Assembly (NCBI GenBank): GCA_950097015.1
Contig: CATNEN010000029.1
Location: forward strand, 62,001-126,000
Direction of reading: 5' to 3'
Length of the DNA stretch: 64,000 bases
Source of the DNA: Macrostomum hystrix
Lineage: Eukaryota; Animalia; Platyhelminthes
The notes beneath the pieces were generated by a model that was not told where the DNA came from, searched no databases, and saw nothing but the letters and a program-made list of their open reading frames with translations. Shown here piece after piece: positions 5,834 to 64,000 of this stretch. Each line of letters starts with the position of its first letter. Position 1 is the first letter of the stretch. Position numbers and translations under genes: made by a program.

Positions 5834-5848
5834 TGGCGACGAGGATGG
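5834..5848 (+). other. Primer-binding site, complementary to the 3' end of tRNA-Ser(GCU)
   Basis: TGGCGACGAGGATGG lies 2 nt after the 5' LTR and is the complement of ...CCAUCCUCGUCGCCA, the metazoan tRNA-Ser(GCU) 3' end as I recall it. Confidence 0.8.
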
Positions 5849-8800
5849 CCCTCAACGTTAGCCCACCGACACCGTACCTGCCGGCAAGCGGACCTCCAGC
5901 AGTTCCATGGAATCGATGGCTAGACGCTTTCGATATCTATTGCCAAGCGGCGCAGATCTGGACTGACCGGCCGGCAGAGGGCGAAGCTCCAACAGAGGAA
6001 GCTACGCGACTGGCAACGAGGAGCCGCAACATGCTGCTGCACCTGCTCGGTTTCGAAGGGCAGCGGATTGCCAGGGCACGCAACGCGATTGTCGACGGCC
6101 ACACCTTCTGGCAAACCCGCGACATGCTGACGACTGTGTTTGGCGACCGGCCAAACGTGATGTTGGCGCGTCACCGATTCCGGGAGCGACATCAGCTGCC
6201 CGGAGAGGACGCAGTCACGTTTGTCGCAGCACTACGCGAGCTGTCAGCCACCTGCAACTACGGAGCAATGGCTGACGAAATGATCCGCGACCAGCTGGCC
6301 CAGAAAACCATCAGCAGCCGGATTCGTGAGCGCCTGCTGACTGAGGACGCCGCCAGGCTGACACTGGACCAAGCCATCGTGATCGCGACGACTATCGAGG
6401 AGGCAGCGGCAGGCAGCAAGGCGATGGCAGCAGCCGGCTCTTCAGGAAATGTCCAGGCTGTGCAGGAGGCCAGACCCCGAGGTCACCATGGCGCTCCGTC
6501 CAAGAAGAAGCCAGGGCAGCAAGCCGGAGGATCCTGCCAGCGATGCGGCCGCAGCCATGATGGCAAAGCCCAATGTCCCGCGCACGGCAAGAAGTGCAAC
6601 AACTGCGGCAAACTGAATCACTTCAGCCGATGCTGCCGCAATAAGACAATGCAGGTCAGCGCGGAAGAGACAATCTACGCAGTCGACGGCAACAACGAGG
6701 TCCGCGCAGACCTTCAGCTCGGCAGCATCCGAAAGACCGTCAGCCTGATGGTCGACTGCGGTGCCAAGGTGTCTCTGCTGAACGAGGCCACGGCACGGAG
6801 CTTGGGCGACATTCGCCTAAGAACGTCGTCGATGAGGCTACGAGCCTACGGCGGGAAGCTGATCGCCCTAGCTGGGATCGCAACAGTGCCCGTCAAGCAC
6901 CACAGCCGTGAGCTCCAACACGACTTCTACGTCACGAGGTCTGGCGAGAACCTCATCGGCCGCGACCTGATGGAGAAGCTGGGCTTCCGCGTGCAACTGC
7001 AGCCGCCAGCTGAGATCGGTGCCGAGATCGCCAGCGTAGACATCGAGCGAGAGTTCCCAACGGTCTTCAGCGGCTCGATCGGTCTCTGCAAAGGCGCAGT
7101 GCACAAACCGAGGATTAACGCAGCGGTGCCACCAGTGCAGCAGCCGCTCCGTCGACTTCCGCTCGCTAAGCAGCAACAAGTCGGCGAGGAGCTGGACCGT
7201 CTGGAGGCCATGGGAATCATCGAACGGGTGAATTCCAGCCCATGGATCTCCAACTTGGTTGTCGCTAACAAGAAGGACGGAAATATTCGAGTCTGCATTG
7301 ACGTGCGAGAGCCGAACAAGTCGCTCGTCATCGACCGGCACCCGATGCCGCAGCTGGACGAGATCTCGGCCAAGATCAAAGCGGCCGGAGGCAGCGTGTT
7401 CTCCAAGATCGACCTTAAGGCAGGATACATGCAGATGAAGCTGCACGAGTCATCACGTGACCTGACAGCATTCATTACTCACCAGGGTCTGTATCGCTAC
7501 TGCAGGGTGCCGTTCGGCCTTGCTTCTGCACCGGCGGCATTCCAGAGGATGCTGGACGACCTGGTGTCTGATCTGCAGGGTGTTGAGCACATCCTGGACG
7601 ACTTCATCGTCTTCGGAGCAACTGAAGCCGAGCACGACTCGAGGCTGCGAGCACTGCTAAAGCGATTGGAGGACGCCGGTCTCACTGCCAACAAGGACAA
7701 GTGCCAGCTGCGGAGGACTGAGATTGAGTTCTTTGGCTTCATCTTCTCAGCCAACGGCATGCGACCGTCTGAGAGTCAGACCAAGGCCTTCAGCGAGCTG
7801 CGCCCGCCGACCAACAGGAAGGAACTGCAGGCGTTCCTGGGATCCGCCAACTATCTGATGCGGTTCGTGCCCAACTTCGCGGAGGTAACGGCGCCACTGC
7901 GGCCTCTGCTGAAAAGCGACGCGGTGTTCGAATGGTCGACGGAGTGCGAGAAGGCATTCGAAACGTTGAAAGCGGCAATCTGCAGTCCGCCGGTCCTAGC
8001 CCACTTCGACCCAGGGGCCGAGACGATTGTCACTAGCGACGCCAGTGCAGAGTCCCTCGGTGCGCAGCTGTCCCAGGTCCAAGATGGCATCGAGAGGCCG
8101 ATCGCCTTCGCCGCCCGGGCCCTGACCGAGACGGAGAAGCGATACGCAGCGAACGAGCGAGAGGCGCTGGCGAGCCTGTGGGCCATGGAGAAGTGGCACT
8201 ACTACCTGTACGGGCGCCATTTCGAGCTGCGGACCGACCACCAAGCGCTGCGCCAGCTCCTGCTGGGACCCAGCGGCACCGGACATCGGCCGCTGCGCAT
8301 CCACCGGTGGTGCGACAGGTTTCAGCAATATGACTTCCATGTGCGATACCTGCCGGGCAACCGCAACTTCGTGGCCGACATGCTGTCTAGGTGGAGCTGC
8401 GGTTCCGACATGAACATCATCCAGCTACCAGACACTGCGATGCCTCCGGTACGGGTTGTTACCCCGCAGCAGCTAGCGATAGCCACAGCCGAGGATGCGG
8501 TTCTGCGACAGGTGATTCAGCACGTCACAAGCGGCAACTGGAGCTCTTCATCGGATAGCGAGCTGCAGCCGTACTTCAAGGTCCGCGAGCACCTCAGCGT
8601 CTGGCAGGACGGCGCCTGCCTGGCTTTCCAAGAACGAGCCGTCATTCCCCTGCAGCTGCGGCGCGAGCTTCTGGAGGCGGCCCATTCTGGACATCCGGGG
8701 GTGGTGCGCACCAAGCAGCAGCTCCGCGAGTTCGCCTGGTGGCCAAAGATGGACGCCGACGTCGAGACGTTCGTCCGAGACTGTGGCGCCTGCGAGACAG

Positions 8801-9807
8801 CGGAGAAGAATTTCAAGCTGCGACCGGCTCCGCTGCAGCCTCTGCCATGGCCGACTACACCGTGGACAGAGATCGCCATCGACATTGTGGGTGAGCTGCA
8901 GGCGGCACCGGCATCATCTCGCTTCCTACTGGTCATTACGGATCTGCACAGCAAATGGCCGGAGGTCTTCGCAACTTCGAGCATCACCACCGAGACGATC
9001 TGCAAGGTGCTGCGCAGTCTTTTCGCTCGCTGGGGCCTCTGCGAGAAGGTCCTCACCGACAACGGACCACAGTTCGGCGATGTCTTCACCGGATTTCTGA
9101 GGAATCGGGGTATTCAGCACCTGAAGACCAGCCCGTACCGTCCAAGCACCAACGGCCAGACCGAGAGACTCAACAGGACGCTGATGGACAGCATCCGAGC
9201 GGCCAGGGCGGCGAACATTCCGATGCAGGACGCGCTGCTGCAGTTCCTTGAAGCTTACCACAGCACTCCACACGCCCTGACTGGGAAGAGCCCGGCTGAG
9301 CTGATGCTGGGCAGGCGATGGCGCACAGCCCTGTCTCTGCTGTCACCGTCTAAGGACAACGCGGTTGCGCATACCGAGATGGCCCAGCGAATCCAAGAGC
9401 GCCAGCAGCGGACGGCAGCCTACACGGACCAGCGGCGAAGAGCGCGACCGCCGGCACTGCGCGCCGGCGACTGGGTTCGGGTGCGGCGTCCAATACGACG
9501 GGGCAAGCTCGGAACGCGGCTCTCGGCGCCGCTTCGGATCGTCAAAACGATGGGCGCTGCTTGCCGACTGACCGACGGCAGCACCTGGAATCAGCAGGCA
9601 CTCGTACCAACATCGATGCGCCTGAGCCCCGAGACACCGGTGCCTGACGAGCTCGACCCGCTCATCGACATTCAAGGACAGCACACGGTTCCGGACGATG
9701 GAGGCGGAGATCCCTTGCCTGCACCGGATGCAGCACAGGGACTAGCGACCCCGCCGGTACGACGATCCGGTCGGCCGAGGCGACCTGTGCAGCGTTATGG
9801 TTGCTGA
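5845..9807 (+). CDS. Gag-Pol polyprotein, 1320 aa (Gag with two zinc knuckles, aspartic protease, RT, RNase H, integrase)
   Basis: Zinc knuckles CQRCGRSH...C and CNNCGKLNHFSRC. Protease LMVDCGA. RT FSKIDLKAGY, RVPFGLASAP and ILDD. RNase H TSDAS and NEREALA. Integrase H-H-C-C and IDIVG/TDNGPQF/GQTER. The PR-RT-RH-IN order defines Ty3/Gypsy. Confidence 0.97.
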   Translation: MALNVSPPTPYLPASGPPAVPWNRWLDAFDIYCQAAQIWTDRPAEGEAPTEEATRLATRSRNMLLHLLGFEGQRIARARNAIVDGHTFWQTRDMLTTVFGDRPNVMLARHRFRERHQLPGEDAVTFVAALRELSATCNYGAMADEMIRDQLAQKTISSRIRERLLTEDAARLTLDQAIVIATTIEEAAAGSKAMAAAGSSGNVQAVQEARPRGHHGAPSKKKPGQQAGGSCQRCGRSHDGKAQCPAHGKKCNNCGKLNHFSRCCRNKTMQVSAEETIYAVDGNNEVRADLQLGSIRKTVSLMVDCGAKVSLLNEATARSLGDIRLRTSSMRLRAYGGKLIALAGIATVPVKHHSRELQHDFYVTRSGENLIGRDLMEKLGFRVQLQPPAEIGAEIASVDIEREFPTVFSGSIGLCKGAVHKPRINAAVPPVQQPLRRLPLAKQQQVGEELDRLEAMGIIERVNSSPWISNLVVANKKDGNIRVCIDVREPNKSLVIDRHPMPQLDEISAKIKAAGGSVFSKIDLKAGYMQMKLHESSRDLTAFITHQGLYRYCRVPFGLASAPAAFQRMLDDLVSDLQGVEHILDDFIVFGATEAEHDSRLRALLKRLEDAGLTANKDKCQLRRTEIEFFGFIFSANGMRPSESQTKAFSELRPPTNRKELQAFLGSANYLMRFVPNFAEVTAPLRPLLKSDAVFEWSTECEKAFETLKAAICSPPVLAHFDPGAETIVTSDASAESLGAQLSQVQDGIERPIAFAARALTETEKRYAANEREALASLWAMEKWHYYLYGRHFELRTDHQALRQLLLGPSGTGHRPLRIHRWCDRFQQYDFHVRYLPGNRNFVADMLSRWSCGSDMNIIQLPDTAMPPVRVVTPQQLAIATAEDAVLRQVIQHVTSGNWSSSSDSELQPYFKVREHLSVWQDGACLAFQERAVIPLQLRRELLEAAHSGHPGVVRTKQQLREFAWWPKMDADVETFVRDCGACETAEKNFKLRPAPLQPLPWPTTPWTEIAIDIVGELQAAPASSRFLLVITDLHSKWPEVFATSSITTETICKVLRSLFARWGLCEKVLTDNGPQFGDVFTGFLRNRGIQHLKTSPYRPSTNGQTERLNRTLMDSIRAARAANIPMQDALLQFLEAYHSTPHALTGKSPAELMLGRRWRTALSLLSPSKDNAVAHTEMAQRIQERQQRTAAYTDQRRRARPPALRAGDWVRVRRPIRRGKLGTRLSAPLRIVKTMGAACRLTDGSTWNQQALVPTSMRLSPETPVPDELDPLIDIQGQHTVPDDGGGDPLPAPDAAQGLATPPVRRSGRPRRPVQRYGC

Positions 9808-9835: not shown

Positions 9836-10091
9836 TGTTGTGTATTGACTGACTGAATGCTAATTTACGCATACTGCCACTATGAGTAGTGCAGTGAGGA
9901 AGCTAGTAGTTTCTAGAACCTTCTGTAGCCAGAATATTCTAGAACCTTCTATAGTCCGTGTTTTCTAGAACTTTCGATTTAACATATCAGCTACCTATAA
10001 ATATATGGACACAAAGCTATCACAAAAAGGATAACTGCTCAATTTGGAATCTGCCAACAAATCCGTTGTTCCCTTCGTTCACTACATAACA
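9836..10091 (+). repeat. 3' LTR (256 bp)
   Basis: Follows the polypurine tract directly; 254/256 identical to the 5' LTR. Confidence 0.96.
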
Positions 10092-28107: not shown

Positions 28108-28554
28108 TGCAACCCAATGCCCATACTGTCATTGTCTGTCATCTCAGCTGCGCTGAATTATTAACCCAACTGAACATTGTAATTTAGAGCACAGATGATG
28201 GTCTGAGCTATCCTGAGAGTCACGATACACTGATAAGGATTTCAGCTTCGATTATACTCGAAACAATTGCATGTAGCAAATTAGTGACAATTCCTTCTTA
28301 CATTCCTGCAATGCGATGTATATATTACCTGCCTTGTAATTCAGAATAGCCTATTCTGCCTCATTTTCTGAATAATAATTATAAACAATATAATAATATA
28401 TGCCAAACTAAAAACACGCGAACAAAAGAATGCTACATGATTTTAGAATCTGTGGGAAGTAGCCAGGCAACAGTTTCTAATGAAAGCAGTGTCATGCAAC
28501 AAAAACATGTAATCAGCTTACAAATTAGTGCTATGAAGAAGATGCAAGACGGGA

Positions 28555-29685
28555 TGGAGACACGGGAGAAATGAGATATTAGAGAGATGAGACAAAGAAG
28601 AGATGGGGTAGTGGAGAGATGAGACACGGGAGAGATGAGATATTAGAGAGATGAGACACAGGAAAGATGAGACGATGAGACACAGGAGAGATGAGACACA
28701 GGAAAGATGAGACGATGAGACACAGGAGAGATGAGACACAGGAGAGATGAGACACAGGAGAGATGAGACACAGGAGAGATGAGACACAGGAGAGATGAGA
28801 CACAGGAGAGATGAGACACAGGAGAGATGAGACACAGGAGAGATGAGACACAGGAGAGATGAGACACAGGGGAGATGAGACACAGGAGAGATGAGACACA
28901 GGAGAGATGAGACACAGGAGAGATGAGACACAGGAGAGATGAGACACAGGAGAGATGAGACACAGGGGAGATGAGACACAGGGGAGATGAGACACAGGAG
29001 AGATGAGACACAGGGGAGATGAGACACAGGAGAGAAGAGACACAGGGGAGATGAGACACAGGAGAGATGAGACACAGGGGAGATGAGACACAGGAGAGAT
29101 GAGACACAGGAGAGATGAGACACAGGAGAGATGAGACACAGGGGAGATGAGACACAGGAGAGATGAGACACAGGAAAGATGAGACGATGAGACACAGGAG
29201 AGATGAGACACAGGAAAGATGAGACGATGAGACACAGGAGAGATGAGACACAGGAAAGATGAGACGATGAGACACAGGAGAGATGAGACACAGGAAAGAT
29301 GAGACGATGAGACACAGGAGAGATGAGACACAGGAGAGATGAGACGATGAGACACAGGAAAGATGAGACGATGAGACACAGGAGAGATGAGACACAGGAA
29401 AGATGAGATATTGGAGAGACAAGATAGTGGGGAGATAGATACTGGAGGAATAGGACACGGGAGAGATAATATAGTGAAGAGATGAGATATTGGAAAGATA
29501 AGACACGGGAGAAATGAGACATGGGTGAGATGAGATACAGGTGAGATAAGACGCGCGAGAGATGAGAGACGGGTGAGATGAGACACGGGAGAGATGAGAT
29601 ATTGGAGAGATGAGACACGGGAGAGATGATATAGTGGAGAGATGAGATAGTAGAGATGTGAGATATTGGAGAGATGAGACACGGG
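28555..29685. repeat. Minisatellite, 16-bp unit GAGATGAGACACAGGA with degenerate flanks
   Basis: Direct periodicity; explains the 287-410 aa Cys/Leu/Ser repeat ORFs. Confidence 0.95.
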
Positions 29686-30274
29686 AAATTCCAAAATGTT
29701 AGTGTCTTTTTAGCCGATCGGAACTGTTTCGTTTTTCTAACCCGTCTCAAACTTGTAGGCGTATTGCTTGTACCACTTGCACAAAATTGGTTTATAATGC
29801 ATCAGAGGTGCGCTACAGTCACAGCGACAGAGAATCATTCGGGCTGCAGGATTGTGTTTGATTTACCGGCTAGATAAGCCAGGCTGAAGTGCCAGGGTCG
29901 GTGCTTTTGTCTAGCCGTAAGTTAACAATATATGAATATAATTTTGCCACGCAGCCTTGGGGGAAGCAGGTGGACTGGTTTTTGTTTGCTCACGTGCGTG
30001 TCAAAACTAGGAAATCAAAAAAATGTATCAACAATGTTTTACACTATTGCGAATGTGGCATACGGTTTTGGCAGTTTATTGCTTGTTAACAAAAAATTCT
30101 TCCATATTTGGTCTAAGTCGGTCTAAGTCTTAAATCTGACTGTAAAATACAACTTTTGAGCAAATAATTGCAAGCTGAACAAGACTCTCCAACTCGGTGA
30201 ATCGTTAGAAAATTTAGAATCGTTAATTAAAAAATCCTGACAATACTTGAAAAATAAATTAACTGGTAGAATCT

Positions 30275-31825: not shown

Positions 31826-34800
31826 ATGATCCACATTTGGCAGCGACAGGCGCGGTTGTCAGTGCCTACCGTTGGACTGATTATTCTGCTGTATCTAACG
31901 ACCGACAGTCAGGTGCGTCGCAAGCGGAACAGACACTGTAGGCAGAGAGAAAAACAGAACATCAGAAGGATGAACAGACACTGTTGGCAGAGAGAAACAT
32001 AGAACATCAGAAGGATGAACAGACACTGTTGGCAGAGAGAAACATAGAACATCAGAAGGATGTACAGACACTGTAGGCAGGGAGACAGACAGAACATCAG
32101 AAGGATGAACAGACACTGTTGGCAGAGAGAAACATAGAACATCAGAAGGATGAACAGACACTGTAGGCAGGGAGACAGACAGAACATCAGAAGGATGTAC
32201 AGAAACTGTAGGCAGACAGACAGACAGAACATCAGAAGGATGGACAGCCACTGCAGGCAGAGAGACAGACAGAACATGAGAAGCATGTACAGACACTGTA
32301 GGCAGACAGAAACACAGAACATGAGAAGCATGTACAGACACTGTAGGCAGACAGAAACACAGAACATGAGAAGCATGTACAGACACTGTAGGCAGACAGA
32401 AACACAGAACATCAGAAGGATGAACAGACACTGTTGGCAGAGAGAAACATAGAACATCAGAAGGATGTACAGACACTGTAGGCAGGGAGACAGACAGAAC
32501 ATCAGAAGGATGTACAGACACTGTAGGCAGACAGACAGACAGAACATCAGAAGGATGGACAGCCACTGCAGGCAGAGAGACAGACAGAACATGAGAAGCA
32601 TGTACAGACACTGTAGGCAGACAGAAACACAGAACATGAGAAGCATGTACAGACACTGTAGGCAGACAGAAACACAGAACATGAGAAGCATGTACAGACA
32701 CTGTAGACAGACAGAAACACAGAACATCAGAAGCATGTACAGACACTGTAGACAGACAGAAACACAGAACATCAGAAGGATGTACAGACACTGTAGGCAG
32801 GGAGACAGACAGAACATAAAAAGGATTTACAGACACTGTAGGCAGACAGAAACACAGAACATGAGAAGCATGTACAGACACTGTAGGCAGACAGAAACAC
32901 AGAACATGAGAAGCATGTACAGACACTGTAGGCAGACAGAAACACAGAACATCAGAAGCATGTACAGACACTGTAGACAGACAGAAACACAGAACATCAG
33001 AAGGATGTACAGACACTGTAGGCAGGGAGACAGACAGAACATAAAAAGGATTTACAGACACTGTAGGCAGGAAGACAGACAGAACATCAGAAGGATGAAC
33101 AGACACTGTTGGCAGACAGAAACACAGAACATCAGAAGGATGGACAGACACTGTAGGCAGACAGAAACACAGAACATGAGAAGCATGTACAGACACTGTA
33201 GGCAGACAGAAACACAGAACATGAGAAGCATGTACAGACACTGTAGGCAGACAGAAACACAGAACATGAGAAGCATGTACAGACACTGTAGACAGACAGA
33301 AACACAGAACATCAGAAGCATGTACAGACACTGTAGACAGACAGAAACACAGAACATCAGAAGGATGTACAGACACTGTAGGCAGGGAGACAGACAGAAC
33401 ATAAAAAGGATTTACAGACACTGTAGGCAGGAAGACAGACAGAACATCAGAAGGATGGGCAGCCACTGTAGGCAGACAGACAGACAGACAGACATTGCAG
33501 CACAAGTAACACCCAATCAACTCATGCGAAACCTTGTAAACACAGTAAGATTGTTTTCTATTTAATTTAAGCGCAAGGCAATAAAATGATCTGTCGCAGG
33601 CCGGATATTAGCTATGCTATGACATTAGCTATGCCGCCAACAGCATTTGTCCCTTTGTCTTTGTTAATTTACCTCAACTGTCAGATGCTTTGATTGTGAT
33701 AAGCCCAACCAATATTCCCACAGGGATCTTTACATGACAACCTCCCAGTCCAATCTTTCGCATCCCTCATTAGAGCTTGAGACCGACCTTGTGAGTCTAG
33801 CGTTTCAAATCCCCATTTTCCAAAATCAGAGTATCGTGCAGCCAGAGAGGGAAGTCAGTGAAGTCGCGGGTTCAGGTGGAGGTTGAGCGCTGCTCATTCT
33901 TTGAGCTGCTCAAACCAGACACGCCCGGCAGCCTCTTGGAGACGCTTTCAGCTCAACTCTGCCTGCTCAAACTCCCCTGCCTGTCTATTGCCCTGTCTCT
34001 CCCCCCAGACCGCTCTTCTCAACGGTGAATTGAGCAGTGCTCACGCGTTAGACACTTTGCCTCCCTACTTTATATAATCATCCCTTTCTATACTCTAGTC
34101 ATCTTCTCAGCCTCAGACTCAAGCTCAAGCGGTTCCAGGTGGAATTAGGATAGAAAAGGATACACATGAGTACTCTGAGTATGAGCAAGGTACGTATTGC
34201 GCAGGTTCTGATGATTAATTCAAATTATTTTCTTAGCCCCAATAGAAATTTTAGATACTAAATTCATTGACAGTAATATGTTGACTTTGACAGTTAACTT
34301 TATTTTATCATGAAATAGACGGGCGTATAATTATTACCTGACACCCGAACACACCTGACACCCGAAGACACCTGACACCCGAACACACCTGACACCCGAA
34401 CACACCTGAAACCCGAAGACACCTGACACCCGAACACACCTGACACCCGAAGACACCTGAAACCCGAAGACACCTGACACCCGAACACACCTGACACCCG
34501 AAGACACCTGAAACCCGAACACACCTGAAACCCGAAGACACCTGACACCCGAACACACCTGACACCCGAAGACACCTGACACCCGAACACACCTGACACC
34601 CGAAGACACCTGAAACCCGAAGACACCTGAAACCCGAACACACCTGAAACCCGAACACACCTAACACCCGAACACACCTGACACCCGAACACACCTGAAA
34701 CCCGAACACACCTGAAACCCGAAGACACCTGAAACCCGAACACACCTGACACCCGAACACACCTGAAACCCGAACACACCTGACACCCGAACACACCTGA

Positions 34801-48751: not shown

Positions 48752-51700
48752 AATGTGTGTGTGCAACTGCAAGCACTTGTTCAGCCACTTGTTTATTAGT
48801 AACAAAATTATTAACGAAATTAAGAGCAGCAACAATTATTTATTCTAATATGAAAACCAGACTCTCACTATCGGACCCAAACTCTCACACTCGGTCCCAG
48901 ACTCTCACACTCGCTCCCAGACTCTCACACTCGCTCCCAGACTCTCACACTCGCACCCAGACTCTCACACTCGCACCCAGACTCTCACACTCGCTCCCAG
49001 ACTCTAACACTCGCTCCCAGACTCTAACACTCGCTCCCAGACTCTCACACTCGCTCCCAGACTCTCACACTCGCTCCCAGACTCTCACACTCGCTCCCAG
49101 ACTCTCACACTCTCTCCCAGACTCTCACACTCGCACCCAGACTCTCACACTCGCTCCCAGACTCTCACACTCGCTCCCAGACTCTCACACTCGCTCCCAG
49201 ACTCTCACACTCGCTCCCAGACTCTCACACTCGCTCCAAGACTCTCACACTCGCTCCCAGACTCTCACACTCGCACCCAGACTCTAACACTCAACACTCG
49301 CTCCCAGACTCTCACACTCGCACCCAGACTCTAACACTCAACACTCGCTCCCAGACTCTCACACTCGCTCCCAGACTCTCACACTCGCACCCAGACTCTC
49401 ACAATCGCTCCCAGACTCTCACACTCGCTCCCAGACTCTAAAACTCGCTCCCAGACTCTCACACTCGCTCCAAGACTCTCAAACTCGCTCCTAGACTCTC
49501 AAACTCGCACCCAGACTCTCACACTCGCAAACAGACTCTCACACTCGCTCCCAGACTCTCACACTCGCTCCCAGACTCTAAAACTCGCTCCCAGACTCTA
49601 ACACTCGCTCCCAGACTCTCACACTCGCTCCCAGACTCTCACACTCGCTCCCAGACTCTCACACTCGCTCCCAGACTCTCACACTCTCTCCCAGACTCTC
49701 ACACTCGCACCCAGACTCTCACACTCGCTCCCAGACTCTCACACTCGCTCCCAGACTCTCACACTCGCTCCCAGACTCTCACACTCGCTCCCAGACTCTC
49801 ACACTCGCTCCAAGACTCTCACACTCGCTCCCAGACTCTCACACTCGCACCCAGACTCTAACACTCAACACTCGCTCCCAGACTCTCACACTCGCTCCCA
49901 GACTCTCACACTCGCTCCCAGACTCTCACACTCGCACCCAGACTCTCACAATCGCTCCCAGACTCTCACACTCGCTCCCAGACTCTAAAACTCGCTCCCA
50001 GACTCTCACACTCGCTCCAAGACTCTCAAACTCGCTCCTAGACTCTCAAACTCGCACCCAGACTCTCACACTCGCAAACAGACTCTCACACTCGCTCCCA
50101 GACTCTCACACTCGCTCCCAGACTCTAAAACTCGCTCCCAGACTCTCACACTCGCTCCAAGACTCTCAAACTCGCTCCTAGACTCTCAAACTCGCACCCA
50201 GACTCTCACACTCGCTCCCAGACTCTCACACTCGCTCCCAGACTCTAAAACTCGCTCCCAGACTCTCACACTCGCTCCCAGACTCTCACACTCGCACCCA
50301 GACTCTCACACTCGCTCCCAGACTCTCACACTCGCTCCCAGACTAAAAAACTCGCTCCCAGACTCTCACACTCGCTCCCAGACTCTCACACTCGCTCCCA
50401 GACTCTCACACTCGCTCCCAGACTCTCACACTTGTATCTAGTCTCTCAAACTCGCATCTAGTCTCTCAAAGTCGCATCTAGTCTCTCAAACACGCATCTA
50501 GTCTAGTCTCTCAAACTCGCATCTAGTCTAGTCTCTCAAACTCGCATCTAGTCTCTCAAAGTCGCATCTAGTCTCTCAAAGTCGCATCTAGTCTCTCAAA
50601 GTCGCATCTAGTCTCTCAAACTCGCATGTAGTCTCTCAAACTCGCATCTAGTCTCTCAAACTCGCATCTAGTCTTTCAAACTCGCATCTAGTCTCTCAAA
50701 CTCGCATCTAGTCTCTCAAACTCGCCTCTAGTCTCTCAAACTCGCATCTAGTCTCTCAAACTCGCATCTAGTCTCTCACACTGTGGTAGAAATTCGGGTG
50801 GCTGTACGCGGCTGTAAGCTCTGGTCCAACAGGGCCAGGCTAAATGCCTATGTCTAACTAGGTGTTAAACAAATGAAATATTGCAGGCGGCCAATGTGTC
50901 GATCTGGTGAACAGATTCCAGTGCATCTGCCGGCTGAATTACCGCGGCCCCAGGTGCTCGGTAAATCTTCGCGACTGTCGCAATCTTACCTGCCTCAACG
51001 GTGGAGTCTGTCGCGACCTGGCCGACGGCCTCGGCTGCGACTGTCCGGCCGGACTCAGTGGCAAATTCTGCGAACTCGGCCTGCCTCCGGCCGACGTGTC
51101 CACGATAGAACGGCCGATGCAGAGCGAGCAGGGTCAGCAGCCAGCCATGGCCTTGCTGCTCCTGGCGGCCGCAGTTCTGCTCCTCCTCCTGCTGCTCCTG
51201 GCGTCGGTCGGCTTCGCCTTCGCCTGGCGGCGCAGGAAGCGCAGAAGCGCTCAGCAGCAGCCGGGGCTCTCCGCTGCGGTTGCTATGGGAACCGCCGAAC
51301 CAGTTTATGACGACAATGACGACTTGGCAGACGAAGACAACAGCGCCAGGCACCGACAGAAGCTTGGCAGCTTCGGTGAGACAACCAAACTGCGCAGCTT
51401 CGAAGACTTTTACCTCGTTAGTGGCGGAGGCGGCGGCGGCGGCGGTCGAGACGCCCCAATGAACAACAGCCGACGAAACCTGCTACATCGGTCTGGCCCA
51501 GCCGACAGCAAGATGGACTACTTTGCGCACAAACAGATTAACAACCTGCTCAGCGCTAGCCAAGGCTGCCTGAGTCCAAGGGACCGGCGACTCACAATGG
51601 CCTACTCGCATGGGTAAGATTCCAACTTTCCTATTTAGTTCTGGGTGGTAGGATAAATTCAAATTATTGAGCAAGATCCCATGATAATCTTGGATTGAAC

Positions 51701-52439
51701 AAAATCCTTCTTTTCTGCAGCAAAATTTTCCAAATTCTCACTGTCAATCATTTTAAATATGTAAATTAGCTTCTCAGTGCGCAATCGTTGCCATGGTGAC
51801 CACCCTGTGGAGTCAATTGGGACTCAGCCTGAACGGAAATTAGCTTTTTGTTTCCAGTTCCGTTGATATTACACTTTCGATCGAAGGACTTACTGAAGTA
51901 AATGGATTCAATACACTTGATTTGTGGAACATTGCTGAAGACAGATTTTAAGTGAAAAATGCATTAAGGAGATGATAAGGTGAAAAATTAAACATTCAAT
52001 ATAGCCATTTACTCGTTCTTTCGTTTAATATTGGTCCTCAACAATGCTCTCAACCGTGTTTCTTAAATTTTCCCATTTCAATCGAGCGGAAATAGTCCTT
52101 TTTCAAGTACATTCAACACCAAAAGCTAAGTTTTGAAGCCCGTGTCTGCCATTGAAATGTTCTCAGAAAATTCCATTTTGTCTACTCCCAATTAACAACT
52201 CAGTAGTATCTATCGCACTTTTATCAAAATCCTCATCATAATGAAAAAATACATGCAATTCCTCCAGAATGCAGCCGGGACAGTCGAGGCCGCTACAGTC
52301 ATCGGCGTCCATGCAGTTCCACCAGGGCCGCGTGGCAACCGTCAGCCGGGCTGGCCTCGGCTCCGCCTCCGTGCACAGCGCCATGCGGCACACGAGAATT
52401 CCCAGTTGCGAGTTCGGCTGCGGCCCGGACTGGGCCTGA
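31826..52439 (+). CDS. Delta: Delta-type Notch ligand (signal peptide, MNNL/C2, DSL, 7 EGF, TM, ICD): join(31826..31912,35003..35317,35874..35949,39136..39387,39729..39783,40211..40344,40866..41053,46464..46752,50887..51613,52268..52439), 764 aa
   Basis: Ten exons with GT-AG introns and matching phases total 2295 nt. MNNL LEFQLSLRGFSNPAG..GRCC...CRTFVRVC. DSL YRFRC..GFYGHSCQKQCMPRDDLLGHYSC..GEMRCLPGYSGDRC. Seven EGF repeats, TM LLLLAAAVLLLLLLLLASVGFAFAW followed by RRRKRR. No Serrate/Jagged Cys-rich domain. First and last exons are less certain than the core. Confidence 0.88.
31926..33490. repeat. Minisatellite, 45-bp unit (ACAGACACTGTAGGCAGACAGAAACACAGAACATGAGAAGCATGT), Delta intron 1
   Basis: 15-aa periodic translation; direct periodicity. 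Confidence 0.95.
34336..34995. repeat. Minisatellite, 17-bp unit ACACCTGA(C/A)ACCCGAA(C/G), ending 7 nt before the Delta exon 2 acceptor
   Basis: Direct periodicity. Confidence 0.95.
36105..36775. repeat. Purine-rich minisatellite, 21-bp unit GAGAATAGAGAATAGATAAGA, Delta intron 3
   Basis: Direct periodicity. Confidence 0.93.
37145..38452. repeat. Minisatellite, 25-bp unit ATAGATGGATAGAGAATTGATAGAA, Delta intron 3
   Basis: Direct periodicity. Confidence 0.95.
38818..39060. repeat. Minisatellite, 18-bp unit CACAATGATCCCTAATCT, Delta intron 3
   Basis: Direct periodicity. Confidence 0.92.
39391..39590. repeat. Minisatellite, 21-bp unit AGGGAAGAGAG(C/A)TCTAG(A/T)GAT, starting inside the Delta intron 4 donor
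   Basis: Direct periodicity. Confidence 0.88.
41085..41607. repeat. Minisatellite, 42-bp unit GGGAATGCGGAGGTGTGAAGTTTGGTAGGTGCGAGTGAAAGG, Delta intron 7
   Basis: Direct periodicity. Confidence 0.92.
42208..45620. repeat. Large minisatellite, about 22-24-bp unit CTGTCTGTAAATCTCATTTGC(T/C)CC, with an 878-bp higher-order repeat, Delta intron 7
   Basis: A rare variant block GTGCCCCCCGTCTGTAAAATTTC recurs at 43261, 44139 and 45017. The same 76-aa ORF appears at 43190, 44068 and 44946. Confidence 0.96.
46315..46417. repeat. Short minisatellite, 22-bp unit GAGAGTGGGACAGACAGGTAGG
   Basis: About 4.5 copies just before the Delta exon 8 acceptor. Confidence 0.9.
46868..47595. repeat. Minisatellite, 20-24-bp unit ACAGATGACCACAATCAC(AC)n, Delta intron 8
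   Basis: Direct periodicity with a variable CA tail. Confidence 0.93.
48707..48749. repeat. (TG)n microsatellite
   Basis: About 21 perfect units. Confidence 0.95.
48858..50780. repeat. Minisatellite, 20-bp unit ACTCTCACACTCGCTCCCAG, switching near 50430 to TCTCTCAAACTCGCATCTAG, Delta intron 8
   Basis: Direct periodicity; two related unit types. Confidence 0.95.
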
Positions 52440-52524
52440 CAACCTGGGCGAATGCCATCAATCACTTCCCGGCTTCTATCGCCAGCAATGCTCTGACTAC
52501 CATCACCTGGCTCCTTTGAGCCAA

Positions 52525-53528
52525 CCCATCCAAGTCTACCCCTCCTCCGAGACAACCCCTCCTCCGAGACAACCCCTCCTCCGAGACAACCCCTCCTCCG
52601 AGACAACCCCTCCTCCGAGACAACCCCTCCTCCGAGACAACCCCTCCTCCGAGACAACCCCTCCTCCGAGACAACCCCTCCTCCGAGACAACCCCTCCTC
52701 CGAGACAACCCCTCCTCCGAGACAACCCCTCCTCCGAGACAACCCCTCCTCTGCACTCAACCCCTACTCCGCGCCCAACCACCCCTCCTCCACACCCAAC
52801 CCCTCCTCAGAGACAACCCTCCTCCAAGTCAACCCTCCTACAAGCCAACCCCTCCTCCAAGCCAACCCTCCTCCGCACCCAACCCCTTCTCCGCACCCAA
52901 CCACTACTCCGCACCCAACCCCGCATCCGCACCCAACCACTCCTCCGCACTCAACCCCACCTCCGCACCCAACACCACCTCCGCACCCAAACCCTCCTCC
53001 GCACCCAACCCCTTCTCCGCACCCAACCCCTTCTCCGCACCCAACCCCTTCTCCGCACCCAACCCCTTCTCCGCACCCAACCCCTTCTCCGCACCCAACC
53101 CCTTCTCCGCACCCAACCCCTTCTCCGCACCCAACCCCTTCTCCGCACCCAACCCCTTCTCCGCACCCAACCCCGCATCCGCACCCAACCCCTTCTCCGC
53201 ACCCAACCCCGCATCCGCACCCAACCACTCCTCCGCACTCAACCCCACCTCCGCACCCAACACCACCTCCGCACCCAACCCCTTCTCCGCACCCAACCCC
53301 TTCTCCGCACCCAACCACTTCTCCGCACCCAACCACTCCTCCGCACTCAACCCCACCTCCGCACCCAAACCCTCCTCCGCACCCAACCCCTTCTCCGCAC
53401 CCAACCCCTTCTCCGCACCCAAACCCTCCTCCGCACCCAACCACTTCTCCGCACCCAACCACTTCTCCGCACCCAACCACTCCTCCGCACTCAACCCCAC
53501 CTCCGCACCCAAACCCTCCTCCGCACCC
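52525..53528. repeat. C-rich compound minisatellite: 17-bp CCCCTCCTCCGAGACAA (to about 52745), then 18-bp CCCCTTCTCCGCACCCAA
   Basis: Direct periodicity; explains the Pro-rich and Gly-rich ORFs. Confidence 0.94.
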
Positions 53529-54214
53529 ACAACGCCTCCGCCCAGTTCTACCTACTCGAAAGGCATCGCTGCAGACGCTGACAAGCAGACGCTGGTCGTT
53601 ATAGCCGGCTTCTGATCTAAAACCAAGCCAGACACATCGAAACCTTTAGAAAAACTAGTCGCGAGCAGCTCCTCACTCTCTATTTTTCTTCGACTTTGGC
53701 TTAGCCATAAAAAATTGGAACACGCGCGCACACGCAGAACAATCAATATGCAATGTCGCACTTCGCACTCCCCCATATTATGAGTATAGAGCATAAAATG
53801 CTAATAGAAATGTTTTATTAAAGAACTGGCTTACGGCTTTCTTGTCCTCAACTACCTCCAGTGAGTTCTCTGACTGGCCCAGCTTCAGATTCACAAAATT
53901 TATTTATATTTTCTATATTTTAACAATAGACTTTTAAAGTCTAATTAGAAAACTGATCATTTTATACCAATGTGAGTGTTTACAATACTGATCAATGTTT
54001 AATCTCCCCATTTACCAACCAGTTACATTGCTCCGCATAGATACATGCTTTATATAGATAAATATGCGGGGAAAAATATCGAATGTCAGCTTTTTCATGT
54101 ACTGCAATGCTTATCCAGGTGTGTTTAAGTATTTTATGTCGAAATTGTAAGATCCGGTTATATATGAAATAATTGTAAGCCTTGGCACATGACCCTTGAA
54201 CGCCCTAACAGTAC

Positions 54215-59590: not shown

Positions 59591-60094
59591 CCCAATTCAT
59601 AAATACCAACGCAAATCCCAAATCTGTAAAATCCCGATTTATACCTTAAGTCTTTAAAATCCCAGTTCATATCTGATATCTATACAATCCCAATATATAT
59701 CCCAACTCAAATAATCCTAATTTGTTTCGCCACAGAATCACAAATCTGAGTCTGTACTCAACTGACACTTCCTGAGGCATCAGCCTTCAAAAAAGGGTGC
59801 CTTTTCAAGCCATTTTTGTCAGCGATCTTTTTTAAATATGCAGCCTTGCCCCTAAATGGACTATTTAAGTGCTTTTTCGCTCGCTTTGACTGACAACTGC
59901 GGCTGCCGCGACTACCCATTGCCGGACATTCATCAGGCTTTCACTTTCAGCTGTCGCTGTCCTTTTTTAGGGAAATGAAAGTGCAGATGAGGCATTCAAA
60001 ATTGTCGCACCTAAGGTCCACGTTAAATTGGGAACCAATATATACCAGCTGTACCAAAATGTTTAAATTGGCGCTAAATGGAACTTCTATTCCT

Positions 60095-60905
60095 CCACTA
60101 CAATCTCCTGAATCTTTGTCTCCTGAATCTCTCCCTCATGAATCTCTCTCCTGAATCTCGCTCTCCTGAATCTCTCTCTCCTGAAACTCTCTCCTGAATC
60201 TCTCTCTCCTGAATCTCTCTCCTTGTCCCTGTCCTGAATCTCTCTCTCCTGAATCTCTCCCTCCTGAATCTCTCTCCTTATCCCTGTCCTGAATCTCTCT
60301 CTCCTGAATCTCTCTCTCATGAATCTCTCTCCCCAGAAACTCTCTCCTGAATCTCTCTCTCCAGAACCTCTCTCATGCATCCCTGTCCTGAATCTCTCTC
60401 TCCTGAATCTCTCTCCTTATCCCTGTCCTGAATCTCTCTCTCCTGAATCTCTCTCTCCTGAATCTCTCTCCTGAATCCCTCTCCTGAATCTCTCTCCTGA
60501 ATCTCCTTCCTGAATCCGTGTCCTGAATTTCTCTCTCCTGAATCTCTGTCTCCTGAATATCGGTCTCCTGAATCTCTGTCTCCTGAATCTCTCTCTCCTG
60601 AATCTCTCTCTCCTGAATCTCTCTCCTGAATCTCTTTCCTGAATCCGTGTCCTGAATCTCTGTCTCCTGAATCTCTGTCTCCTGAATCACTGTCCAGAAA
60701 ATCTCTCTCCTGAATCTCTTTCCTGAATCCGTGTCCTGTATCTCTGTCTCCTGAATCATTGTCTCCTGAATCTCGGTCTCCTGAATTTCTCTCCCGAATC
60801 TCTGTCTCCTGAATCCCTCTCCTGAATCTCTCTCCTGAAAATCTCTCTCCTGAATCTCTTTCCTGAATCCGCGTCCTGAATCCATGTCTTGAATCTCTTT
60901 CCTGA
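60095..60905. repeat. Degenerate minisatellite, CCTGAATCTCTCT(CT)n, about 13-15-bp unit
   Basis: Recurring CCTGAATC core with variable CT runs. Confidence 0.9.
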
Positions 60906-60907
60906 AT

Positions 60908-61452
60908 CCCTAGAATCCCAATCCATTCCCATTAGAATCACAATATATTCCCATTAGAATCCCAATCCATTCCCATTAGAATCCCAATCCATTCGCATTA
61001 GAATCCCAATCCATTCCCATTAGAGTCCCAATCCATTCCCATTAGATTCCCAATCCATTCCCATTAGAGTCCCAATCCATTCCCATTAGAGTCCCAATCC
61101 ATTCCCATTAGAATCCCAATCCATTCCCATTAGAATCACAATATATTCCCATTAGAATCCCAATCCATTTCCATTAGAATCCCAATCCATTCCCATTAGA
61201 GTCCCAATCCATTCCCATTAGATTCCCAATCCATTCCCATTAGAGTCCCAATCCATTCCCATTAGAATCCCAATCCATTCCCATTAGAGTCCCAATCCAT
61301 TCCCATTAGAGTCCCAATCCGTTCCCATTAGAGTCCCAATCCATTCCCATTAGAATCGCAATCCATTCCCATTGGAATCCCAATCCATTCCCATTAGAGT
61401 CCCAATCCATTCCCATTAGAGTCCCAATCCATTCCCATTAGAGTCCCAATCC
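60908..61452. repeat. Minisatellite, 22-bp unit TAGA(A/G)TCCCAATCCATTCCCAT
   Basis: Direct periodicity. Confidence 0.94.
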
Positions 61453-61652
61453 CCAATCGAAGTCCCCTCTGACTAGAGCCCTGGCATCAATCAAAGTTCA
61501 ATTCAAATTAACAGTATGTAATCTATAAGCCTCCAACCAACTGCGTAACAGACGCGCAGCAGGGAGTAAAAACTATTTAAGCGAGCACTCAATAATTCAA
61601 GCTGGGTGAAAAAGAAAATTCTAGAATTTCATTTCTGGCGCAATGCTAGCAG

Positions 61653-61720
61653 GTGACGTCACTCGCGGGTCCCCAGCCAGCATTCCAGGCGCTGATTTTG
61701 GGCTTCCGAGCTAAAAATAG
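61653..61720. promoter_or_regulatory. Putative enhancer: palindromic CRE GTGACGTCAC (61653-61662) and MEF2 site GAGCTAAAAATAG (61708-61720)
   Basis: Consensus matches in a GC-rich patch 1 kb 3' of the peptide gene. The 13-mer is identical (inverted) to those at 55338 and 63204. Confidence 0.45.
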
Positions 61721-62737
61721 CATCAGCTCAGTGGGCCGCACCCACCCCACCGCCGCAACCCGTGCGACCTCGCAGTTTTTTTCGCCTCTTGGGTGGATAT
61801 TGGGTGACATGAAACTGGCGTTGCCAACGACGCGGTAGCTAAGGGCAATAAAGAATGCCGAAGTAGATTGGAATGCGAATTAGTCTATCAATCCGCTAGT
61901 TGTGAAAATGACTCTAGACTAAAAATTGGAGTTAATGAAAGCCACACAAATTGCTCTCTGCCAGCGATTTGAAAGTAGTTAGCCCCTAGTGCTAAATGCT
62001 AATTATTAACTTGATTTCATTTACTCAAACTTCACCGAGGAAGCATTTGAGTACAGTGTGAGATTGAAATCAAACTGATAAGTCCGAGGGTTCATAGCAG
62101 TTGCACTGCATAGCAGCAAAAGACAGAAGACATTTTATTTGGCCGCATTAAAAACATTGCAGCTTAAAGAAAATGCTTTGTGTTTTCATATTCAGTAGTT
62201 TGAGGCAGAATGTTTTCGCATGCGTTACGTTAAAGTACAGCGTAGGTAACTGCTTCGGAATCGGCCTGAGGCTCAACTAGAAAGCAAGCAAAAATTAAAA
62301 CAAATCAACGATCATATAGTGCAAGAAGTAGTGCTCAAATTGGCGAGCATTAAAATCAGGCATAGACTAAAGTTAATCGACAGTAGAACTTCAAGGCAGC
62401 TGTGCAGAGAGCAAAAGTGCACAATTTTGAGGTCGGCAGGCAGTTTATGTAACGCGATTAATATGCATATGAGAAGGAAAAAACAATATGGAATTTGATT
62501 TAATGAAAACAAAAAATAACCAAGAATAAATCACATTTTTGCTGCGAGTTTTGCATATAGAGAGACTGCGCGACAACTGCGCCACGGAGGCTTCGTTGTA
62601 GTTTGGATTTTCAATTCTCGATCACACTGGCTTGATCAAATCGACTTTTATAGTGACACATCGTTAAAATTGTCCTTCGGTCATGTCTTTGAGCAGGTTG
62701 GCAACCAATCAATCATTGGGATCTGGGACTACTGGAA

Positions 62738-63040
62738 TCAGCACTTCAGCCAGGCTGGCGGAGTCTTGCCCTGCTTCCTATACCTGTTGCACTCGTACGC
62801 TCGCATGAGCACATTCTCAGGTCCGCGCCGCTTCCGGTTGAGCACGGCCTCGCCGACATCCGGGCGCTGCCTCATCAGGTAGATCAGCGATTGCGCAACA
62901 GCCAGACGATTGTCTTCAATCGGTTCGGCGTTCAAATCGAGTAGCAACGCTTTCGAAGGCGACAGGGCGACGGCGTCCAGGACTGGTAGGAGGACCATCG
63001 ATAGCGCCAGACAGAATTGAAGGCCTGTGTTGAGTAGCAT
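62738..63040 (-). CDS. Unrecognised small secreted peptide precursor, 100 aa: signal peptide, acidic pro-region, RKRR site, 28-aa C-terminal peptide with two Cys
   Basis: Hydrophobic N-terminus LQFCLALSMVLLPVLDA. Tetrabasic RKRR at aa 69-72. Mature GPENVLMRAYECNRYRKQGKTPPAWLKC. GC-rich coding-like composition, an upstream TATA box at 63146-63153, and a candidate ATTAAA signal at 62499-62504. Confidence 0.78.
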   Translation of the reverse strand: MLLNTGLQFCLALSMVLLPVLDAVALSPSKALLLDLNAEPIEDNRLAVAQSLIYLMRQRPDVGEAVLNRKRRGPENVLMRAYECNRYRKQGKTPPAWLKC

Positions 63041-63119
63041 AGCTTCGTCAAATAGCTGTCAGTGTTCTCTTGGCTGTGTCTCTAATTGTCTCTCTCTCTC
63101 TCTCTCTCGGTCAAGTGAA

Positions 63120-63292
63120 GTGAACTGGGACTGCCGCCGCTGGCCTATTTATAACCGGCTCCGGGCGGCGGCTGGGGTGTCTGCGCCGGCTTGGAATCGC
63201 CTTCTATTTTTAGCTCCTCCCCCGCCGCCGCCGCCGCCCCCAGTCCGGAGCAGCTGAGGGGCGTGGGAATAGAGCCTTCTAGTCTGACGCAT
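63120..63292 (-). promoter_or_regulatory. Core promoter of the peptide gene: Inr-like CCAGTT (about 63126), TATAAATA (63153-63146), MEF2 (63204-63213), CGTGGGAA CSL-type site (63262-63269), TGACGCAT (63285-63292)
   Basis: Motifs read directly; orientation and spacing fit the downstream ORF. Confidence 0.6.
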
Positions 63293-63363
63293 TTCGCGGC
63301 CAATCGACCCGCTGCAGCGGCAGACTGGACAATCTGGCCCAAGTTTTCAAATGAATGAACCAA

Positions 63364-63759
63364 TGACTCAGGCCCGAAAATGGACTTTGCCAATGCAGGC
63401 GTAGGGGAACCAATAGCGGATAAGTGTGTAGGCAGTCTGCTTTGAAGAAGAGGCTGTGCCTTGTTTACAAAATATAGCTTTCACAAATAAAAAAGCAGTG
63501 CATTCCAACCTAACAAACTGAAATAAAATACTATGGAGAATGCTAAGCGCGGCCACTGATGTCTGCCCCCCCCACTCCGCAACACAGACTTGCGAATTCC
63601 ACACGGCTTTACAATTTTACAATTTACAACCTAGACCAGCCTCGACTTTCTTAATAAGGGCCTTTTTACCCTCCGCTCAGACAGACAATGCTTTAATTAA
63701 TGCATCGAAACTCCCAAGTGAGGTTTTGGGTGAGTCAGGCTTGAGTCAGGCCTGACTCA
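63364..63759. promoter_or_regulatory. AP-1 site cluster: TGA(C/G)TCA at 63364, 63731, 63742 and 63753
   Basis: Four perfect AP-1 heptamers, all extended as TGASTCAGGC; three lie within 29 bp. Confidence 0.55.
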
Positions 63760-64000
63760 TGTCTCACTTCAGCTGCTCATAAGTGTCTAGGGAAGTGTCT
63801 AGTGTTTACATTTTTTTCAGGGAAAATTCAACGTTGTTAGAGAATCAGGCGGAGTGTTGGGAGAACGCCCACAACTTCCTTGGCTAACAGAAATGGGACA
63901 GGGCTCTACCAACAGGCCGCGCCGCCCACGCAGTCCTCCATTTGTCCGATAGCTCCTAGCTGTAGCTAATACCCAAGTTCCAGCGAGTATTAAGCAGCTT

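Follow-up and report, generated by a model that had tools for sequence, protein, structure and literature searches.

Close to the end of a 64-kb stretch of Macrostomum hystrix DNA (the window, by which we mean the whole stretch analysed) a reading frame of 100 codons runs on the reverse strand. It raises two questions: whether it is a functional gene, and what kind of product such a gene would make. The original prediction had taken it for the single-exon precursor of a cationic, disulfide-looped peptide and had left the family unassigned. The frame divides as follows.

62738–63040, reverse strand: complete coding sequence, 100 codons plus a TGA stop (62738–62740), intron-free, with an ATG start
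62966–63040, reverse strand: predicted signal peptide, residues 1–25, cut after A-V-A (from hydropathy and the −3/−1 rule)
62837–62965, reverse strand: pro-piece, residues 26–68, mildly acidic (pI 4.6, net charge −2.2)
62825–62836, reverse strand: R-K-R-R furin/convertase-type cleavage site, residues 69–72, invariant in all versions compared
62741–62824, reverse strand: predicted mature peptide of 28 residues, residues 73–100, with an N-terminal helix and a 17-membered Cys84–Cys100 ring

The leader and the cleavage sites were assigned by rule (−3/−1 positions and basic site respectively). The leader combines an n-region without charge with a hydrophobic core at residues 9–21, where the hydropathy over nine residues reaches a maximum of 2.8, and places A-V-A at −3/−1 before Leu26. 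The predicted 28-mer contains six Lys/Arg and two Glu residues (pI 9.6, net charge about +4, computed reduced mass 3309.8 Da). Its two cysteines, Cys84 and Cys100, are arranged as C-x15-C, Cys100 being the last residue of the protein, and the ring between them reads N-R-Y-R-K-Q-G-K-T-P-P-A-W-L-K. Every detail that had been claimed for the frame (100 residues, leader, acidic pro-region, RKRR, a C-x15-C 28-mer with six basic and two acidic residues) proved correct, and the layout of a prepropeptide, with leader, pro-piece, RKRR and C-terminal peptide in this order, was borne out. No further copy of the gene was found inside the 64-kb window, and an exact-product look-up in protein collections returned no annotated product for the M. 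hystrix precursor.

Assembled contigs from four sequencing runs provided the transcript evidence. Two runs of one 2020 study (X5 and X6) each have one contig, 939 or 941 nt long, that is 100% identical to 62162/62156–63078; the 18–22 extra letters of these contigs fall in a (GA)n run that was skipped by the matching. The same contigs give zero cover on 60001–62144 and on 63217–64000, while two runs of a 2024 study (X1 and X2) cover 62236–63151. None of the four runs is recorded as an RNA library, so that transcription is read from where the contigs end. We read the X5/X6 contigs as mRNA of the peptide gene, because a genomic library would not end at such borders. The search for a transcript, on which the original prediction had staked itself, yielded contigs that are confined to the gene and leave its flanks without cover. 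Three further features go with these borders.

63146–63154, reverse strand: TATA box TTATAAATA (gene strand) in the context GCCGGYTATAAAT...GCGGCGGC, a context conserved with M. lignano
63041–63120, reverse strand: 5′ UTR, containing the (GA)n run at about 63079–63117, with the start placed near 63120 from the contig ends
62156–62737, reverse strand: 3′ UTR according to contig cover, with contig ends at 62156/62162

A canonical AATAAA (62135–62140, gene strand) is located just past the contig end, and the contig borders fit both this signal and the TATA box at 63146–63154. The gene thereby yields an unspliced mRNA of ∼1 kb, composed of a 5′ UTR of ∼80 nt, a coding sequence of 303 nt and a 3′ UTR of ∼600 nt. 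That the gene has a single exon, as had been claimed, finds support in the 939/941-nt contigs: they run collinear with the genome, free of joints.

A word search with the M. hystrix precursor returned one relative, the M. lignano product BOX15_Mlig013743g1, a partial protein (P0001; 58% identity, E 1e-19). Also in its cluster is g3, and g1/g3 are found at three M. lignano loci (L001–L003); the M. lignano records (PAA64917.1, PAA47625.1 and PAA73750.1) are annotated just as partial hypothetical proteins. The first 29–31 residues of these 'partial' products are translated 5′ UTR (residues 1–29 of P0001 and 1–31 of P0004; L001 10001–10087), and the true start is Met residue 30 of P0001, or residue 32 of P0004, which aligns with the M. 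hystrix Met. A Pfam match of P0001 to ADIP falls in this translated 5′ UTR and is meaningless. The annotated M. lignano start lies about 30 nt past its TATA box and hence marks the likely start of transcription. Downstream of the peptide gene, in M. hystrix as at each of the three M. lignano loci, there is a Delta/Jagged-like DSL/EGF gene, whose exons (window 50884–52446, forward strand, against L001 15470–17359) are 71–73% identical at the nucleotide level. Because the neighbours match, the M. lignano loci are orthologous or homeologous to the M. hystrix gene, with which they have in common synteny, processing site, a 28-residue ring peptide and a promoter block. No tandem copy occurs in about 10 kb of flanking DNA to either side of the gene at any of the three loci.

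Alignment of the two species showed the RKRR site, both cysteines, their 15-residue spacing, the 28-residue length and the segment GPENVLMRAY to be invariant; the RKRR is common to M. hystrix, the three M. lignano loci and a variant copy described below. The junction LDAVALSPS at the end of the leader is likewise unchanged, and a conserved island, YLMRQRPD, stands inside the pro-piece, which in M. lignano is 8 residues shorter at one place and 3 longer at another. The mature part is 84% identical; the single Trp of the M. hystrix peptide is not kept in M. lignano. Nei–Gojobori estimates of dN and dS against M. lignano were 0.10 and 0.49 for the site plus mature part, 0.39 and 1.01 for the pro-piece, 0.43 and 1.22 for the leader, and 0.28 and 0.85 for the whole coding sequence, which gives dN/dS of 0.33 for the whole and 0.2 for the mature part in a comparison that spans two species and one variant version. 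On these estimates purifying selection has preserved the reading frame although the two species are far diverged, and the predicted product has been held the most tightly; a highly conserved mature part next to a freer pro-piece and leader is the pattern that would be expected of a processed bioactive peptide. Such a difference between mature part and pro-piece had been proposed earlier as a test and was the outcome here (dN 0.10 versus 0.39); the RKRR and the Cys pair, whose conservation had been named as decisive, are kept in the relative at all three loci.

These data also bear on the view that the frame arose by chance or that the transcript is non-coding, for which its short length and the absence of an annotated product from protein collections would speak. 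Against this, the reading frame with its start and its stop position, the RKRR and the two cysteines are all conserved at a dS of about 0.85 and a dN/dS of 0.33, the gene is annotated at three M. lignano loci, and transcript-like contigs cover it; a chance frame has become extremely improbable and is effectively excluded. We conclude that the gene is real: it is transcribed and intronless, and it encodes a leader-bearing precursor of 100 residues in which neither the tetrabasic site nor the Cys pair varies among the versions compared.

To which family does the precursor belong? With E values up to 10, Pfam returned nothing for the precursor or for its C-terminal 32 residues, and nothing meaningful for the M. 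lignano protein. Among PDB sequences, residues 69–100 matched ribosomal protein uS15/S13 at E 1.2–4.5 (RTPPAWLK; RYYK..K.LPP.W), which we took as chance; the part of the gene that resembles uS15/S13 is the ring segment at 62741–62800 (residues 81–100). An exhaustive HMMER search with a two-species profile against 1.84 billion representatives passed, besides P0001, only two tandem-repeat proteins, P0002 (650 aa, E 4e-10) and P0003 (766 aa, E 1e-8). Both were rejected, because their scores sum weak stretches and their pairwise BLASTP E values are 60 and 67. When the M. lignano protein served as the query, a word search returned it alone (P0001). In the papers searched, neither the peptide motifs nor the gene id Mlig013743 was found, and an earlier listing in the flatworm neuropeptide catalogues (McVeigh 2009; Koziol 2016) is possible; those papers found that deal with neuropeptides, antimicrobial peptides or single-cell atlases of Macrostomum do not describe the gene, and its id is absent from the supplements of PMC5730564, PMC5946080 and PMC12896417. 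In line with the failure of the original prediction to assign a family, no described family claims the precursor in Pfam, PDB sequences, HMM search or word searches. As far as can be seen from these searches, the gene would found a small, undescribed family restricted to Macrostomum, where restricted means that no relative occurs among sequenced and annotated genomes, including the other flatworm genomes at NCBI, most Macrostomum data being transcriptomes.

Layout offers more points of comparison than homology does. The natriuretic peptides (CNP, ANP/BNP; PF00212) likewise have a 17-membered ring, a C-terminal peptide, a precursor of about 100–130 aa and R-x-x-R-type release, and in CNP, too, the second Cys is the final residue. 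The natriuretic ring signature is C-F-G-x3-D-R-I-x3-S-x2-G-C, and the family is known from vertebrates. The M. hystrix peptide, in contrast, lacks this signature and has no Pfam match at E up to 10; by this comparison the natriuretic peptides are a layout analogue, and the resemblance is not one of membership. Somatostatin, allatostatin-C, urotensin-II and MCH precursors also combine a signal peptide, a pro-region and a basic site with one non-amidated C-terminal disulfide loop. Their rings, however, are of 6–12 residues with FWKT/PISCF-type cores, whereas the M. hystrix ring is of 17 and has no such core; the earlier statement that neither FWKT nor PISCF is present held when residues 84–100 were read directly, and HMM and word searches gave no match of the precursor to somatostatin/allatostatin-C types. 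Language-model (Atlas) neighbours of the whole precursor were mostly neuropeptide precursors (DH31, UTS2B, gastrin/CCK, NPFF, PDH, NMU, NPS) at 0.85–0.89, with UTS2B at 0.88, and the nearest named cluster for residues 69–100 was 'ANP domain' at 0.80, but Atlas scores below 0.9 carry little meaning and lie in the range reachable by shuffled sequences (0.80 by a third of these).

The predicted shape bears on how such a peptide could act. The AlphaFold model, built with two sequences, had low overall confidence (pLDDT 62), with a helix at residues 74–89 (pLDDT about 82) followed by a loop back to the C-terminal Cys. The hydrophobic moment of the predicted helix is 0.14 (0.11–0.16 over three versions), its mean hydrophobicity is negative, and 36–39% of the residues are hydrophobic; the peptide thus lacks the amphipathic helix and high hydrophobic moment by which α-helical cationic antimicrobial peptides are recognized. 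A helix that is not amphipathic argues against a lytic antimicrobial peptide.

Our leading explanation, to which we give about an even chance, is that the gene encodes the precursor of an extracellular signalling peptide (neural, endocrine or paracrine) with a receptor as its target, as opposed to one that lyses membranes. The leader would be removed co-translationally on entry into the ER, and a disulfide between Cys84 and Cys100 would close the ring. A furin/PC-type convertase would then cut after R-K-R-R and release the C-terminal 28-mer with its net charge of +4, for which no carboxypeptidase or amidation step would be needed. In the released peptide, helix 74–89 would be tied back via the 17-membered ring to the last residue, and the peptide would act as an extracellular ligand on a receptor; the route of secretion, the cell that makes the peptide and its receptor are all inferred. 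We favour signalling because no part of the precursor is more constrained between the species than the product, which is hydrophilic and non-amphipathic, and because the layout matches single-copy C-terminal hormone precursors. In its favour, too, a PC2 homologue of the nervous system that is needed for prohormone processing is present in M. lignano (PMC4490696). Against it, tetrabasic sites of the R-X-K-R type mark constitutive furin substrates, such as growth factors and hepcidin/LEAP2-type defence peptides, no less typically than they mark neuropeptides.

Runs X1 and X2 contain a second version of the gene. Their contigs over the coding sequence bear a consistent set of differences, and in X1 both versions coexist over 62769–62882. 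In the mature part the variant has G73A, N76Y, A81W (two bases) and K99R, the last being the only change in the ring. Its stop is altered from TGA to TGG, which extends the product by W-F-Q; R72 and A31 are changed synonymously, and the pro-piece has S51L and I53T. Changes in the mature part affect 6 of 84 bases, all of them non-synonymous, versus 10 of 502 in the 3′ UTR (Fisher p 0.018), a rate three times that of the 3′ UTR. One variant contig ceases to match at 63151, inside the TATA box. The variant contigs may represent a paralogue, an allele or a sister species. Two versions that differ in the mature peptide just by amino-acid changes amount to a small natural experiment on ligand diversification. 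Divergence by non-synonymous changes only is more usual in defence, toxin and reproductive peptides than in neuropeptides, and in this respect counts against a signalling function.

A rival reading is a role in host defence. The peptide would then be antimicrobial, its cationic loop neutralized by the acidic pro-piece until freed by furin, and its gene induced by wounding or infection through an AP-1/MEF2-type promoter. Consistent with this are the net charge of +4 opposite an acidic pro-piece, a furin-type RKRR resembling hepcidin/LEAP2-type processing, the AP-1-like and MEF2-like motifs of the promoter, and a mature part that differs between the two versions by non-synonymous changes only and faster than the 3′ UTR. 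Cationic defence peptides of the Rana-box, thanatin, hepcidin/LEAP2 and arenicin kinds share with the M. hystrix precursor an acidic pro-piece, a basic site and a cationic C-terminal loop; the M. hystrix loop, however, is of 17 residues versus 7–8, an amphipathic helix is absent, and the searches showed no similarity to them in sequence. Loop peptides such as thanatin or arenicin need no such helix, which is a point for defence. Against it we count the low hydrophobic moment (0.14), the negative mean hydrophobicity and the 36–39% hydrophobic residues, the strong constraint on the mature part, greater than on any other region when the species are compared (dN/dS 0.2), and the absence of a BRICHOS or other antimicrobial-precursor domain: BRICHOS, as in arenicin-type precursors, is absent according to Pfam, and the pro-piece has just 43 residues. 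We consider a defence peptide unlikely. Where the original prediction had named signalling and antimicrobial functions side by side, conservation pattern and layout favour the former, and the helix (hydrophobic moment 0.14) weakens the latter. A bolder extension strikes us as a long shot: the two versions would belong to an inducible peptide system for host defence or wound response, the first one known to be gene-encoded in a free-living flatworm, in which a conserved AP-1/MEF2-type promoter drives a furin-released ring peptide whose N-terminal half diversifies between the versions under positive selection.

The divergence of the versions by amino-acid changes would also suit a secreted product of non-neural glands (prostate or seminal, adhesive or release, rhabdite-type, or toxin gland) that acts outside the animal or in the mate. 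The Drosophila sex peptide, too, has a C-terminal ring that ends in Cys; the W-x8-W motif over the ring of sex peptide and DUP99B is, however, absent from the M. hystrix peptide, whose single Trp is moreover lost in M. lignano. Apparent confinement of the gene to the genus Macrostomum would also fit a gland product: small secreted proteins of glands that are restricted to the lineage are reported to be numerous in Macrostomum, with about 76 transcripts limited to the prostate among them (PMC5977470). Reproduction-related Macrostomum genes, on the other hand, are reported usually to evolve too fast for clear orthology (PMC7336406), unlike a mature part that is still 84% identical at a dS of about 0.85. 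We regard a gland product of this kind as quite unlikely.

A receptor-acting peptide and a defence peptide would both be compatible with a further possibility, which concerns the final product itself. Cleavage at Q-G-K(T/K) within the ring would yield an amidated 18-mer (...YRKQ-NH2), either free or disulfide-bonded to the C-terminal octapeptide. The claim that the peptide has no amidation motif calls for a qualification, in that the conserved Q-G-K(T/K) lies inside the ring and reads G-K-K in M. lignano. In favour of this cut, R-K-Q-G-K is invariant in all versions, the second Lys in M. lignano creates a classical signal for cleavage plus amidation, and, with its basic P4 residue, the site agrees with the rules of monobasic cleavage. 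The M. hystrix site, in contrast, is monobasic and followed by T-P-P, and the conservation of both cysteines and of the exact ring length speaks for the closed ring as the functional form; AlphaFold puts the G-K of the ring in a loop, and the model is uninformative on cleavage. An amidated 18-mer is in our estimate decidedly improbable, and we retain the intact 28-residue ring peptide as the putative ligand.

Outside the coding sequence, the UTRs (including the 3′ UTR) and flanks of M. hystrix and M. lignano cannot be aligned; the TATA box, which is identical in the two species, and two upstream elements do align.

63202–63226, reverse strand: promoter block of 25 nt, identical at all three M. 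lignano loci
63285–63291, reverse strand: TGCGTCA heptamer, AP-1/CRE-like, which aligns with a consensus AP-1 TGAGTCA in M. lignano

The 25-nt block stands some 50 nt upstream of the TATA box, matches over 25/25 positions in blastn (E 3e-6) and recurs exactly in L001 at 9897–9921, in L002 at 9901–9925 and in L003 at 8786–8810. Its core, CTAAAAATAG (63204–63213), we take to fit the MEF2 consensus YTA(A/T)4TAR, and it is by motif a candidate MEF2-type site. M. hystrix has a second, perfect TGAGTCA at 63364–63370. Taken as a description of motifs, the term 'inducible-type promoter' used in the original prediction is fair, given the TATA box, the MEF2-type core and the AP-1/CRE-like heptamers.

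Flatworm peptide signalling is mostly known from amidated linear peptides, and a ring peptide would enlarge this repertoire. Genes of this kind, for a secreted propeptide that carries one C-terminal ring peptide, are familiar, and current views are not overturned. The 25-nt block is an element ready for reporter work in M. lignano. Since M. lignano is amenable to RNAi, in situ hybridization and stable transgenesis (PMC5730564), where the peptide is made, how its gene is regulated and what the promoter block does are directly testable.

Two other features of the window were recorded. At 5845–9807 (forward strand) there is an uninterrupted pol-type frame of 1320 aa, with protease, RT, RNase H, and integrase zinc-finger and core domains, from a Ty3/gypsy-like LTR retrotransposon. 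The region 26000–61452 consists mostly of minisatellites, in at least 20 arrays with periods of 15–47 nt and 5–141 copies, up to 3.4 kb long; these produce strong local GC and AT skews, and long 'ORFs' such as those at 28518–29750, 31895–33520, 52516–53604 and 60373–60885 are translated repeats.
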